DNA of 46,728 bases from Prasinococcaceae sp. CCMP 1430 (lineage: Eukaryota > Plantae > Prasinodermophyta). The stretch's first letter is position 1; each line of letters opens with the position of its first letter. The stretch is from the NCBI GenBank assembly GCA_013416795.1, contig RQSC01001147.1, forward strand, positions 36,481-83,208. Reading direction: 5' to 3'. Made by a program: the position numbers and the translations under genes. Positions 1-7,095 of this stretch are shown piece after piece. Below the pieces are notes generated by a model, which saw only the letters and a program-made list of their open reading frames with translations, was not told where the DNA came from and ran no database searches.

Positions 1-477
1 CGGCGCCGAGCGCTGGCGGCGGCCGCCGACGGCGGCAAGGCGGCGGGCGGCAAGAAGCGCGGGCGGGGCTTCGGTGCCTCCTCGGACCCGGTGCAGGATG
101 CGCTCATCTCGGGTCTGAGCGAGGTCGCGCAGACGTCGGGGCGGACCCCGAGCACCCCGACGACGGTGCTCGGCGCGGCCACGGACGACGAGGCCAAGTG
201 GGCCGAGCTCGACGCCAAGGTGAACGAGTACCCCATCCTGCGGAGCTTCAAGGCCATCGGCACGGGCGGCGACGACTTCGTGGCGGCGATGGGCGCGGCG
301 GCCGCCGGCGCGCTGGGCCGAGACGCGCTCGCCGCCGAGCAGCTGAGCGCGCGCCCGTCCTCCGGCGGCAAGTACATCGCCGTCACCGTCGGGCCGCTGC
401 GCATCGAGTCGTCGGAGCAGCTGCAGGCAGTGTACAAGGCCATGCAGGCGGACGGCCGCATGAAGTACTTCCTGTAG
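1..477 (+). CDS. DUF493/YbeD-like small protein, probably plastid-targeted; 5' partial
   Basis: Frame is open from base 1 to TAG at 475-477. The segment EYPILRSFKAIG...RPSSGGKYIAVTVG...SEQLQAVYKAM...MKYFL follows the DUF493 pattern. GC3 is strongly biased. Confidence 0.75.
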   Translation, partial: RRRALAAAADGGKAAGGKKRGRGFGASSDPVQDALISGLSEVAQTSGRTPSTPTTVLGAATDDEAKWAELDAKVNEYPILRSFKAIGTGGDDFVAAMGAAAAGALGRDALAAEQLSARPSSGGKYIAVTVGPLRIESSEQLQAVYKAMQADGRMKYFL

Positions 478-1546: not shown

Positions 1547-1570
1547 GAGGCTCGACGCGGACCCGCAATT

Positions 1571-1720
1571 CGTCAACGACGGGAATTTCGTCTCGAACCC
1601 CCGATGCACATCCGGGTGGTGTCGTGAAAACCTCGAAGTCGCGCGGCGCCGCGCGCGCGGCGCCGGTCCCGCAATCCCCGGATTAGAAGTCCGATGCCTT
1701 GTCCATTAGGCCACGAAGAC
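1571..1720 (-). tRNA. tRNA-Arg(UCU) with two non-canonical T-loop introns; exons 1720-1668, 1637-1632, 1584-1571
   Basis: Spliced 73-mer GTCTTCGTGGCCTAATGGACAAGGCATCGGACTTCTAATCCGGGGATTGCGGG|TTCGAG|TCCCGTCGTTGACG. D-stem GCCT/AGGC; anticodon stem TCGGA/TCCGG with TCT at 1687-1685; T-stem GCGGG/CCCGT; acceptor stem 5/7 paired; G73. BHB-like motifs at both introns and oligo-T downstream. Confidence 0.85.
1590..1599 (-). promoter_or_regulatory. B-box-like element GGTTCGAGAC inside tRNA intron 2
   Basis: Matches the Pol III B-box consensus GTTCRANNC. The gene's native B-box is split by the introns. Confidence 0.55.
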
Positions 1721-1984: not shown

Positions 1985-2788
1985 NNNNNNNNNNNNNNNN
2001 NNNNNNNNNNNNNNNNNNNNNNNNNNNNNNNNNNNNNNNNNNNNNNNNNNNNNNNNNNNNNNNNNNNNNNNNNNNNNNNNNNNNNNNNNNNNNNNNNNNN
2101 NNNNNNNNNNNNNNNNNNNNNNNNNNNNNNNNNNNNNNNNNNNNNNNNNNNNNNNNNNNNNNNNNNNNNNNNNNNNNNNNNNNNNNNNNNNNNNNNNNNN
2201 NNNNNNNNNNNNNNNNNNNNNNNNNNNNNNNNNNNNNNNNNNNNNNNNNNNNNNNNNNNNNNNNNNNNNNNNNNNNNNNNNNNNNNNNNNNNNNNNNNNN
2301 NNNNNNNNNNNNNNNNNNNNNNNNNNNNNNNNNNNNNNNNNNNNNNNNNNNNNNNNNNNNNNNNNNNNNNNNNNNNNNNNNNNNNNNNNNNNNNNNNNNN
2401 NNNNNNNNNNNNNNNNNNNNNNNNNNNNNNNNNNNNNNNNNNNNNNNNNNNNNNNNNNNNNNNNNNNNNNNNNNNNNNNNNNNNNNNNNNNNNNNNNNNN
2501 NNNNNNNNNNNNNNNNNNNNNNNNNNNNNNNNNNNNNNNNNNNNNNNNNNNNNNNNNNNNNNNNNNNNNNNNNNNNNNNNNNNNNNNNNNNNNNNNNNNN
2601 NNNNNNNNNNNNNNNNNNNNNNNNNNNNNNNNNNNNNNNNNNNNNNNNNNNNNNNNNNNNNNNNNNNNNNNNNNNNNNNNNNNNNNNNNNNNNNNNNNNN
2701 NNNNNNNNNNNNNNNNNNNNNNNNNNNNNNNNNNNNNNNNNNNNNNNNNNNNNNNNNNNNNNNNNNNNNNNNNNNNNNNNNNNNNNNN
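1985..2788. other. Scaffold gap (804 N)
   Basis: Run of N. ORFs spanning it are artefacts. Confidence 1.
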
Positions 2789-2882
2789 GCCACCCACGGG
2801 CACGGGCACGGCCACGGCCACGGCGCCACGGCCACAGCGCCACGGCCGCGGCGCCACGGCCATGGCGCCACGGCCGCGGCCG
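2789..2882. repeat. Degenerate CCACGG/GCGCCACGG tandem repeat at the gap edge
   Basis: Repeated cacgg/ccacgg/ccgcgg units are directly visible. They may have caused the assembly gap. Confidence 0.7.
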
Positions 2883-3250
2883 ACGAGGTCCGGCATGCGT
2901 CCATCCAAACCCGGCACTTACAGTCCCATCCCGACACTCCGCGGCGCCACCGCCACGGGACCCCCTTCCCCCCGTCCGACCAGCGGAGAGGATCAGGCCG
3001 TCCTGCGCTTCCTGGCGCCGCCCTTGGCGCTGTTCATGAGCTGCGCGTGCGTCGGTGCCATGCTGCGCGGCGGAATGTACGGCAGCTGCGGCATGTTCGC
3101 GCGGCGGCGGATGAGCTCCGGCCCGCGCTCCTTCAGCTCGGCGACTGTCCTCGTGCCCAGCACACGAAAACACACACTAAACACTAAGACGCGCTCGACT
3201 CCCCCGCCAAACCGAACCCCCCACCGCAGCGGCCACCGCCGTCCGTCATC

Positions 3251-5806
3251 ATGGGGCGCAACAGCAACAAGCGCCGCAAGGGCGGCCAGCGCACGCAGAA
3301 GCGCGACTTCAAGAAGGGCGGCGGCGGCCGCGAGGGCGAGGCGAAGCGCAGGCGGTACGACGCCGACCCCGCGCAGCGCGCGGCCAGCGCGCAGGCGTCG
3401 GAGGCGTTCATCGAGTACTACAAGGCGCAGAACATCGTGGGCGAGGCCGACGGCGAGTGGGACGCCCTCGTGGCGTGCATGAAGACGCCGCTCCCGGCGT
3501 CCTTCCGCATCAACGGCAGCGGGCAGTTCGCCGCGGGCGTCAAGGCGGGCTTCGAGAGGCGCTTCTCGGGGCTCATGGGCGCCAGCGCCGACGGCGACGA
3601 GGGCACCAACAGCTACACGGACGACGCCGGCGAGCGCGTGGTGGTGCCGCCGCCGCGCGCGCTGCCCTGGTACCCCGGCGGCCTCGCGTGGCAGGTCAAC
3701 CTCAGCCGCCACCAGCTGCGCCGCCTGCCGCAGTTCGCCGAGCTGCACGAGTACATCAAGCGCGAGAACGAGGTGGGCACCATCACGCGGCAGGAGGCGG
3801 TGTCCATGATACCGCCCCTGCTGCTGGACGTCCAGCCGCACCACAACGTGCTCGACATGTGCGCCGCGCCGGGCTCCAAGACCTTCCAGCTCCTCGAGAA
3901 GCTCCACGCGGGCGAGGGCGAGCCCACGGGCATCGTGGTGGCCAACGACGTCAACGTGCAGCGCTGCCACCTGCTCATCCACCAGACGAAGCGCGTGAAC
4001 AGCGCCAACCTGCTGGTGACGCAGCACGAGGCGCAGTCCTTCCCCATGGTGGGGCGCCGCTGGGTGGAGGGCCGCCCCGACGACTCGGAGGCCGTGCGCT
4101 TCGACCGCGTGCTGTGCGACGTGCCGTGCTCGGGCGACGGCACCATCCGCAAGGCGCCCGACATCTGGCGCAAGTGGAACGTCGCGAGCGCCAACGGCCT
4201 CCACCGCCTGCAGACGCGCATCGCGCAGCGCGGCGCGCGCCTCCTGCGCGTGGGCGGGCGCCTGGTGTACTCCACGTGCTCGCTGAACCCCATCGAGAAC
4301 GAGGCGGTGGTCGCCGAGCTGCTGCGCTCCTCCAAGGGCGCGCTCAAGCTGCTCGACGTGTCCGCCGAGCTCCCCGAGCTGCGGCGCAACCCGGGCGTCG
4401 GCGAGTGGCGCGTCAAGGGGCGCGACCGGTGGTACGGCACCCTCGCCGACGTCGACCACGACCGCGACCGCATGGTCAGCGCCAGCTTCTTCCCGCCCAA
4501 GGACTACTACGACCCGGACGTGTACGACGAGGCGCTCGCGCAGGCCAAGGCCGCCGCCGAGGAGGAGGCGAAGGAGAAGGCGGAGGAGGCGGAGGACCAG
4601 GCGCAGCAGCAGAAGCGCTCGCCAGAGGACATCGCGATGGAGACCGCGCGCGCCGTGGCGGCCAGGCAGCACGCGGAGCTCCCGCTGCCGCTGGAGCGCT
4701 GCATGCGCCTGCTGCCGCACCACCAGGACACCGGCGGCTTCTTCGTGGCGGTGATGGAGAAGGTGGCCGAGTGGCCCAAGGACGTGCGGAGGAAGATCGG
4801 CGCGAAGCAGGCCATCGCCGCGCTGAGGGGCGAGGCCGACCCGGCGGAGCTCGCGCGCGTCGCCGCGGAGGAGGAGCGGAGGCAGGCCAAGGAGAGCGCC
4901 GAGAAGGACGCCAGGATCGCGGCGAAGAGGAAGGCCGAGGAGGAGGAAGCGGCGGCGGCGGCGGCGGCCGAGGGCGGCGCGGGGGGGGCGCAGGAGGGCG
5001 CCGCGGCCGGCGCGGCCGACGGGGGCAAGTACAAGGAGAAGCGGCAGGGGCACCACAAGGGCATCGACCCGCTGATCATGTACAATGACGCGGCGGTGAA
5101 CGCCAGCATACGCGCGTTCTACGGCCTGGCGGAGGGCGCGTTCCCGATGGAGAGCCAGCTGCTGGTGCGCTCGATAGGCGGGCTGCCCAAGCGCATCTAC
5201 TACGTGTCCAAGCCCGTGGCGGATCTGATCGCGCTCAACGAGAAGACGCACGAGCTGAAGGTGGTGGTGGTGGGCGTCAAGATGTTCGAGCGCCAGGAGG
5301 TCAAGGACGGCAGCGTGGCGTGCGCGTACCGGCTCGCGCAGGAGGGGCTCAGCTGGCTGGAGGGCGTCATGACCAAGCAGGTGCTGCGTCTCACCCTGGC
5401 CGAGATGCACACGATGCTCGCCACGCGCTCGCAGCCGCGCCACTACTTCGAGGGCGCCACGGGCGAGGCGTTGGACGCCCTCTCCAAGGGCTGCTGCGTC
5501 ATCCGCCTGCGCGACGGGGAGGCGCTGCCCGAGGGCACCGTCGCAGGCGCCGCGCCCGTGTCCGTCCCCTGCTGGAAGGGCCCCGCCAGCCTGAACCTCC
5601 TCATCACCTCCACCGACGCGCACGTCATCCTCGAGCAGCTGGGCGGCAAGAAGGAGAGCGAGCCCAAGGTGGACAAGCCCGCCGAGGCTGCGGCGGCCAA
5701 GGTCGAGGTCGAAGGTGAGGGGCCCGCCCAGGCGAAGGCCGAGGGGCCCGCCCAGGCGAAGGCCGAAGGAGAGGGCGCGCCCGCGCCGATGGAGGCTGAG
5801 GCGTAG
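3251..5806 (+). CDS. NSUN2: tRNA (cytosine-5)-methyltransferase, NSUN2/Trm4 family; intronless, 851 aa
   Basis: Motifs VLDMCAAPGSKT, VVANDV, FDRVLCDVPCSGDGT, GGRLVYSTCSLNPIENEAVV and LPHHQDTGGFFVAV. Confidence 0.95.
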   Translation: MGRNSNKRRKGGQRTQKRDFKKGGGGREGEAKRRRYDADPAQRAASAQASEAFIEYYKAQNIVGEADGEWDALVACMKTPLPASFRINGSGQFAAGVKAGFERRFSGLMGASADGDEGTNSYTDDAGERVVVPPPRALPWYPGGLAWQVNLSRHQLRRLPQFAELHEYIKRENEVGTITRQEAVSMIPPLLLDVQPHHNVLDMCAAPGSKTFQLLEKLHAGEGEPTGIVVANDVNVQRCHLLIHQTKRVNSANLLVTQHEAQSFPMVGRRWVEGRPDDSEAVRFDRVLCDVPCSGDGTIRKAPDIWRKWNVASANGLHRLQTRIAQRGARLLRVGGRLVYSTCSLNPIENEAVVAELLRSSKGALKLLDVSAELPELRRNPGVGEWRVKGRDRWYGTLADVDHDRDRMVSASFFPPKDYYDPDVYDEALAQAKAAAEEEAKEKAEEAEDQAQQQKRSPEDIAMETARAVAARQHAELPLPLERCMRLLPHHQDTGGFFVAVMEKVAEWPKDVRRKIGAKQAIAALRGEADPAELARVAAEEERRQAKESAEKDARIAAKRKAEEEEAAAAAAAEGGAGGAQEGAAAGAADGGKYKEKRQGHHKGIDPLIMYNDAAVNASIRAFYGLAEGAFPMESQLLVRSIGGLPKRIYYVSKPVADLIALNEKTHELKVVVVGVKMFERQEVKDGSVACAYRLAQEGLSWLEGVMTKQVLRLTLAEMHTMLATRSQPRHYFEGATGEALDALSKGCCVIRLRDGEALPEGTVAGAAPVSVPCWKGPASLNLLITSTDAHVILEQLGGKKESEPKVDKPAEAAAAKVEVEGEGPAQAKAEGPAQAKAEGEGAPAPMEAEA

Positions 5807-5955: not shown

Positions 5956-7095
5956 CTAGCTCGCCGCCCGGCCGTGCTTCTGCAGCTGCTCGGCGTCGAT
6001 CTGCGCGAGTGCGGGCAGCGCGTCCACCAGCCGCTGGTGGTACACCGGCGAGGCGCCCGCGGGCGTGCGCTCGAGGTACACAGTGGACAGCGTCGGCAGC
6101 GACGCGCGCAGCGCGTCCGCGAGGCCCTCCAGCGCGCTCACGGGCACCTTGGTGTCGTTGAGCCAGAGGTCCTCCAGCTGTGGCAGATCCGCGAGGCCGT
6201 CGAGGCTGCCGATGGGGTTGTCCGCGGCGTCGAGCAGCAGCACGGGCAGGCCGTCGAGCCCTTCGAGCCGCTCGACTCCGTTCTGGCTCACGCTGAGCTC
6301 CTCGAGCGGCGCCCCGCAGCCGGCGCCCGCGCCCTCCGCCGGGCCGAGCGCGGCGAGCGCGGCCGTGCTCGTCAGGCGATTCGCTTGCAGGCTCAGGCGG
6401 CGCAGACGGGGCATCGCGCGCAGCACGTCAGGGTCCGCCACGGTGATCTTGTTTGAGCCGAGCCAGAGCTCCTCGAGCGCGCCGAGGCCCTCCATGCCCT
6501 CCATGGTGCGCAGCCGGTTCGAGCCCAGCTCGAGCACGCGCAGCGACGCGCGATTCGCGATGCCCTCGGCCCTCCTGATCTTGTTCTTGGCCGCGTAGAG
6601 CTCGGCCAGGCACGGCGGGGCGCGCGCGAGCGGCTCGAGCGAGCGTATCCCATTGTATGAGATGTCGAGGTGCGTCAAGTGCCGCAGCGCGTCGAGCGGC
6701 GGGCACTCGCTCAGCAGGTTGTCGCGCAGCACGAGCGTCGTGATGCCCGCGCACGCGGCCGCCGCCGTCACGCGTGCGGCGCCCTCCAGGAGATTCTTGC
6801 GCAGGGAGAGCGAGGCGAGGCGTGCGCCCGCGTCGGCGTCTTCCAGCACACACGCAATCGCGCTCTCGTCGAGGCGGTTCCCGGTGAGCTCGAGCTCCTC
6901 CACGCCGGCGGACACGCGGACGCCCGCCAGCGACGGCAACTGGCGGTAGCCGAGGTCGATGACGCCGTCGAGCACCTCGTACTCAACAGCGTGCTCGGCG
7001 TCCGACGCTTCCGCCTGGAGGCCGGGCGCCGCCGCGGGCGGCGCCCTCTCCCCCAGCGGCTCGCCGCCCGAGCCCGCGCCCACCTCGCCGTCCAT
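5956..7095 (-). CDS. Leucine-rich repeat protein, Sds22/PPP1R7-like (379 aa)
   Basis: ATG at 7095. Tandem SDS22-type LRRs (LTHLDISYNGIRSL, LRVLELGSNRLRTM, LEELWLGSNKI) and a cap LYLE.TP..Y...L...LP.L.QID-like segment. Confidence 0.8.
   Translation of the reverse strand: MDGEVGAGSGGEPLGERAPPAAAPGLQAEASDAEHAVEYEVLDGVIDLGYRQLPSLAGVRVSAGVEELELTGNRLDESAIACVLEDADAGARLASLSLRKNLLEGAARVTAAAACAGITTLVLRDNLLSECPPLDALRHLTHLDISYNGIRSLEPLARAPPCLAELYAAKNKIRRAEGIANRASLRVLELGSNRLRTMEGMEGLGALEELWLGSNKITVADPDVLRAMPRLRRLSLQANRLTSTAALAALGPAEGAGAGCGAPLEELSVSQNGVERLEGLDGLPVLLLDAADNPIGSLDGLADLPQLEDLWLNDTKVPVSALEGLADALRASLPTLSTVYLERTPAGASPVYHQRLVDALPALAQIDAEQLQKHGRAAS

Follow-up and report, generated by a model that had tools for sequence, protein, structure and literature searches.

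A look-alike of the tRNA promoter B box, GGTTCGAGAC, lies in a predicted intron of a tRNA-Arg(UCU)-like gene with two predicted introns (1720-1571, minus strand) in a GC-rich green alga. Positions refer to the window, that is the whole stretch of 46,728 nucleotides that was analyzed. Most likely, the motif arose through small local duplications that rearranged the T-arm region of the gene. Judged from the copies of T-arm sequence found at the locus, there is about an even chance that it is a relic of these duplications, doing no more than pair inside the intron, with no role in the promoter. A reading in which the motif works as a B box is weighed below with other alternatives; the readings overlap in part.

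The tRNA-Arg(UCU) gene and its exons

Standard searches overlook the gene: neither ARAGORN nor Rfam at the gathering threshold reports a tRNA anywhere in the window. At the E-value threshold exon 1 (1720-1668) obtains an Rfam tRNA score of 26.2 bits, with the 5' part alone being matched. Since the model finds no place for a T arm, this falls short of the gathering score of 29. The anticodon TCT is found in exon 1 at 1687-1685 (minus strand). Past G53 (1668) the sequence continues with a 30-nt GC hairpin, the hexamer TTCGAG, 47 nt holding the motif, and then T60 with the rest of the gene (Table 1).

Reference genes were obtained by scanning metagenomes with a D-arm/anticodon pattern, which yielded 120 loci (62 distinct). 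All 120 are uninterrupted tRNA-Arg(TCT) genes of other organisms and not orthologs. The exons were compared with these genes piece by piece rather than as a joined sequence. Exon 1 is identical to one uninterrupted homologue at 47 of 53 positions, and the A-box region holds a 13-nt stretch common to the uninterrupted homologues. The homologue T arm reads GATT GCGGG TTCGAGT CCCGC or CCCGT, which is the same as three pieces of the window taken in order. For one homologue the piecewise matches place positions 45-53 at 1676-1668, positions 54-59 at 1637-1632 and positions 60-66 at 1584-1578, the last being seven identical bases in exon 3. In this piecewise reading the joined T arm equals the homologue consensus exactly.

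In the pair table by coordinates the D, anticodon and T stems are all fully paired and the T loop reads TTCGAGT. The acceptor stem is paired at five of its seven positions; the two mismatches, U4.U69 and U5.U68, are adjacent (1575-1576 with 1716-1717, minus strand), and just 3 of the 62 distinct uninterrupted homologues show as many (5% tail). Reading the sequence as far as the terminator revealed no better acceptor 3' strand and no third intron. With its TCT anticodon, its paired stems and its exons matching intact genes, the locus is read from its sequence as a tRNA-Arg(UCU) gene for which splicing is predicted.

Table 1. Features of the tRNA-Arg(UCU)-like gene and its trailer, with the number of specified positions of the B-box consensus GGTTCGANNCC that are kept in each stretch compared with it.
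Feature	Positions	Strand	Specified positions kept	Description
Exon 1	1668..1720	minus		tRNA positions 1-53, contiguous; acceptor 5' strand, D arm, anticodon arm, variable loop, T-stem 5' strand
A box	1702..1713	minus		Intact, tRNA positions 8-19, TGGCCTAATGGA; from the coordinate pair table
Canonical B-box place			6/9	GG plus the start of intron 1
Intron 1 (53/54)	1638..1667	minus		Predicted; 30 nt; GC hairpin, 9 bp in the fold
Exon 2	1632..1637	minus		6 nt, TTCGAG (first copy), tRNA positions 54-59; in register after intron 1
Exon-2 copy			5/9	
Intron 2 (59/60)	1585..1631	minus		Predicted; 47 nt; holds the B-box-like motif
T4 run	1627-1630	minus		Sense strand, in intron 2 between exon 2 and the motif; pairs with GAGA beside the splice helix
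Intron-2 hairpin, 5' strand	1612..1624	minus		Pairs with 1604-1594 and hence with the GGGGGUUCG part of the motif; minimum-energy folds
B-box look-alike (intron-2 copy)	1590..1599	minus	8/9	GGTTCGAGAC, in predicted intron 2; pattern search of the window DNA and direct reading
Exon 3	1571..1584	minus		T60, T-stem 3' strand CCCGT, acceptor 3' strand CGTTGAC, discriminator G
Trailer T-arm copy	1554..1569	minus	6/9	Degenerate; between the tRNA end and T6; positions 46-61 of the uninterrupted T arm
Pol III terminator-like T runs	T6 1546-1541, T8 1536-1529	minus		A 24-nt trailer separates exon 3 from T6

Two predicted bulge-helix-bulge introns

The archaeal and eukaryal splicing endonucleases recognize a bulge-helix-bulge with a central helix of 4 bp, in which each strand is cut 2 nt on its 3' side. 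Also part of the rule for the splicing endonuclease is the A-I pair, formed by position 32 with intron position -3. Here the intron boundaries are set by the mature tRNA sequence, and the central helices can be read off against them. For intron 1 the helix is complete (4/4; UGCG at 1673-1670 with CGCG at 1643-1640) and both cuts are in register; the 5' bulge measures 4 nt and the 3' site is without an outer helix. The central helix of intron 2 is also complete (4/4; UUCG at 1637-1634 with CGAA at 1590-1587) and in register. The T stem serves as its outer helix, which forms only once intron 1 has been removed; the inner helix is weak, a U-A/U.G run with GAGA (1594-1591) facing UUUU (1630-1627). 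At random sites of the window, the combination of helix and register passes by chance at a rate of 2.5-2.7% per site. Both intron motifs are modelled as relaxed forms of the bulge-helix-bulge, and splicing of both introns is predicted.

The T4 run in intron 2 is a possible weak or premature Pol III stop. Four RNA runs yielded 0 contigs on 1350-1980; these are poly(A) or metatranscriptome libraries, which are unsuited to tRNA, so this is no proof of absence.

Part of these observations would also fit a decaying tRNA pseudogene, with a T-arm region scrambled by insertions and duplications, nothing spliced, and the motif left over from the old T loop. We regard such decay as improbable. Both inserts show the central helix in register, at a chance of approximately 0.025 each. 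The T4 run within the gene and the extra T-arm debris at the locus speak for decay. The stems are all fully paired apart from the acceptor, where two adjacent U.U mismatches, equalled in so few of the distinct uninterrupted homologues, speak for decay. The lack of RNA contigs over the locus points the same way, in libraries of a kind that would miss a tRNA. Against this, the joined T arm reproduces the homologue consensus without a single difference, and proper T6 and T8 terminators follow the gene.

The B-box-like motif in intron 2

The original prediction had placed a complete B box at 1590-1599, inside the second intron. The motif GGTTCGAGAC is indeed found at exactly 1599-1590 on the minus strand, within predicted intron 2. 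Its distance from the A box (1713-1702), estimated earlier at about 100 nt, amounts to 114 nt when measured between their starts and leaves a gap of 102 bp. The proposed overlap with the splice helix is present too: the strand CGAA (1590-1587) of the central helix begins with C1590. The claim that the canonical B box is destroyed at the DNA level needs to be toned down. This box is split between G53 and T54 and thereby loses T54, T55 and A58, but 6 of the 9 specified positions survive by coincidence in the GC-rich sequence.

Compared to the B-box consensus GGTTCGANNCC, the sequence GGTTCGAGACG keeps eight of the nine specified positions, position 62 being the sole mismatch. This makes the intron-2 copy the best B-box match in the gene at the DNA level (Table 1). 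GGTTCGA and C61 are kept together in the motif only and nowhere else in the gene. The commonest B box among the homologues, GGTTCGAGTCC (present in 40 of 62 distinct genes), is matched by the motif at 9 of 11 positions.

The pattern GGTTCGANNC has 2 matches in the window, against 1.64 expected. For the 77 intron bases approximately 0.001 chance matches are expected on the sense strand, which rules out chance as the source of the motif. Further motif matches at 6516, 9112 and 40550 were set aside; the DNA around them looks coding and is free of tRNA genes.

The base-specific contacts of human TFIIIC220 were considered as an additional measure (G53, T55, C56, G57, C61 and C62; PMC11811891). Five of these six positions are present in the intron copy. 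However, the canonical place equals this score (5/6) by GC-rich coincidence, and contact positions were dropped as a means to discriminate between the two.

Calling the motif intronic depends on the splice path, because TTCGAG occurs twice (1637-1632 and 1597-1592) and the same mature tRNA results from either copy. If the second TTCGAG (1597-1592) were the real micro-exon, the gene would lose 70 nt (1667-1598) as one intron and 7 nt (1591-1585) as a micro-intron, and the motif would be a true, nearly intact T-loop B box. The chance of this is slim in our judgment. The 7-nt insert does show the UUCG/CGAA helix (4/4) in register, and the constrained energies of the two paths are nearly equal (-15.1 kcal/mol for the second-TTCGAG path and -15.7 kcal/mol for the first). 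The 70-nt intron, however, reaches central pairs of 3/4 only and is without an inner helix, whereas the 30-nt hairpin intron of the first path is a clean unit that ends exactly ahead of the first TTCGAG. In the 7-nt intron, moreover, a loop of 3 nt would take the place of the bulge, and this intron is shorter than the 11-nt minimum reported in C. merolae (PMC3728597). On this basis we favour the model in which the first TTCGAG is the exon.

Probable origin of the motif from the T arm

The locus contains more T-arm sequence than a single tRNA would use. The copy GGGTTCGAG (1600-1592), which covers the larger part of the motif, is identical at nine out of nine bases to positions 51-59 of the uninterrupted tRNA-Arg(TCT) genes, a score that was reached by 27 of 3000 shuffles. 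The trailer copy (1569-1554) is identical to the homologue T arm at 14 of 16 positions, and none of 3000 shuffles scored as well. This same copy forms a 12-nt direct repeat with 1675-1664, at the junction of exon 1 and intron 1 (11/12 identical). Together with the micro-exon TTCGAG, three extra T-arm fragments are thus present at the locus (the motif copy, the micro-exon and the trailer copy). Local duplication therefore suffices to account for the motif, and no selection is needed.

According to the relic reading, which we prefer, the motif would be a second copy of part of the T arm (G51-G59 plus C61) of this nuclear gene. In the transcript it would form the 3' strand of an intron hairpin beside the splice helix, and it would leave together with the intron. 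The fit to the B box would then be inherited rather than selected, and transcription would be independent of the motif. The fold of intron 2 is no more stable than that of shuffled sequences (z +1.25), which counts against this reading; a structural role of the motif would be hypothetical as well.

Further observations run against the relic reading. Two B-box positions have decayed in the trailer copy and are preserved in the intron copy; this contrast points to constraint, but weakly, given a chance of approximately 30% under equal decay. In addition, some internal anchor would be useful to the gene, since TATA-like sequence is lacking within 50 bp upstream and GGTTCGA with C61 is unique to the motif.

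A possible promoter role

In the alternative put forward by the original prediction, the intronic copy would be a working B box: the B-box-binding module of TFIIIC would sit on 1599-1590 and reach the A box at 1713-1702, and TFIIIB would be placed upstream. From the sequence features listed here this appears possible but doubtful. The accompanying idea that the intron would double as an element of the promoter is, to us, a tentative one.

Several features are consistent with such a role. The motif keeps 8 of 9 specified positions and 5 of 6 human contact positions, whereas the canonical place loses T54, T55 and A58; the contact-position score, however, is without discriminating power in GC-rich DNA. 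It follows the A box on the same strand. The 50 bp upstream of the gene (GC 0.76) contain no AT-rich or TATA-like sequence. The low number of chance matches to be expected in the introns, approximately 0.001, can be counted in its favour as well, although the presence of the motif is explained by duplication. B boxes that are not part of the mature RNA have been described before, in the external B boxes of Dictyostelium (PMC3159450) and the RPR1 leader (PMC2566860). Set against these points, there is a single instance of the intronic motif.

The spacing of the boxes has to be considered as well. Yeast is known to tolerate longer spacings between the A box and the B box. In human tRNA genes the distance from box to box is 30-67 bp, with a flexible TFIIIC linker bridging variable distances (PMC11811891); the gap of 102 bp observed here exceeds this range. 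Also, for red algae with split tRNA genes the use of upstream, TFIIIC-independent promoters has been proposed (PMC3728597, PMC3978253), in line with the relic reading. The broader statement, that in this deep-branching green alga introns splitting the T loop carry a substitute B box so that TFIIIC would still find the gene, strikes us as rather unlikely.

Comparison with known systems

The predicted introns resemble those of the red algae Cyanidioschyzon merolae and Chondrus crispus, whose nuclear tRNA genes can each hold as many as three introns, placed in the D, T or variable regions and with bulge-helix-bulge-like splice motifs (PMC3728597). T-loop introns at 58/59 have been validated in Chondrus (PMC3728597; PlantRNA 2.0 preprint 10.1101/2021.12.21.473619). 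Unlike in the red algae, the two introns described here flank a 6-nt T-loop exon, and the host is an alga of the green lineage. For C. merolae, which among algae with split tRNA genes has been studied best, homologs of the box-binding part of TFIIIC were not found and an upstream promoter was inferred for the split tRNA genes (PMC3728597, PMC3978253). These inferred promoters are TATA-like, with no promoter signal between the exon segments, whereas the present gene has a B-box look-alike in its intron.

The external B box of Dictyostelium is similar in being a B-box motif beyond the mature tRNA sequence and downstream of the A box (PMC3159450). There it is associated with TFIIIC, located approximately 41 bp downstream of 66% of the tRNA genes, and comes in addition to an intact internal box (PMC3159450). 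In our case, by contrast, the motif is located in a predicted intron and accompanies a split internal box, and a single example is at hand. In yeast leaders of the RPR1/snR52 type, boxes A and B lie within a transcribed segment that is afterwards cut away (for RPR1 a leader of 84 nt; PMC2566860). Both boxes occupy the 5' leader in that arrangement, whereas here it would be the B box alone that is located in the discarded part, which is an intron. Uninterrupted tRNA-Arg(TCT) genes have the canonical type 2 Pol III promoter. The present gene shares the form of their A box, but the motif is displaced downstream by approximately 70 bp from the usual site and lies outside the T stem-loop of the RNA.

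These differences bear on how Pol III gains access to tRNA genes whose internal boxes are broken by ectopic introns. The sole proposal so far is the upstream TFIIIC-independent promoter of the red algae. If the motif does act as a promoter element, a displaced intronic B box would be a second solution, one that ties the gain of introns to promoter architecture. In that case, a eukaryote that depends on TFIIIC would gain or keep T-loop introns only where the promoter is compensated. The element itself would be transcribed, used at the DNA level and discarded at the RNA level. If, on the other hand, the motif is a duplication relic, it would preserve a record, rarely available, of the way in which small T-arm duplications give rise to such introns and micro-exons.

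Neighbouring features

The terminator itself appears to be duplicated, as a 12-nt direct repeat (92% identical, 1528-1551) holds both of its T runs.

The left neighbour of the tRNA gene is an open reading frame at 91-477 (plus strand) for a DUF493/YbeD-like protein (PF04359). A 771-bp metagenome scaffold from Tara Oceans encodes a protein that is 99% identical to it; therefore, close wild relatives of the alga are present in ocean samples. Relatives of this reading frame were found on contigs of 771-1304 bp, one of which ends short of the tRNA position. No match was obtained when spurious open reading frames over the tRNA served as stand-ins in a DNA search.

Positions 1986-2788 are an assembly gap of N, which accounts for the low apparent GC of 2001-4000 and for the spurious long open reading frames across the gap. 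At 1122-1304 we observed (CA)n-rich tandem repeats with GCGTGTA units. Weak, sub-threshold Rfam matches to several microRNA families in this region are most likely artefacts of low complexity.

An AT-rich patch is located at 1813-1860, 93-140 bp upstream of the tRNA (GC 0.33, with surroundings of 0.72-0.76). It holds the plant telo-box-like AAACCCTAA at 1824-1816 on the strand of the tRNA. The patch could belong to the tRNA or to the promoter of a neighbouring gene.
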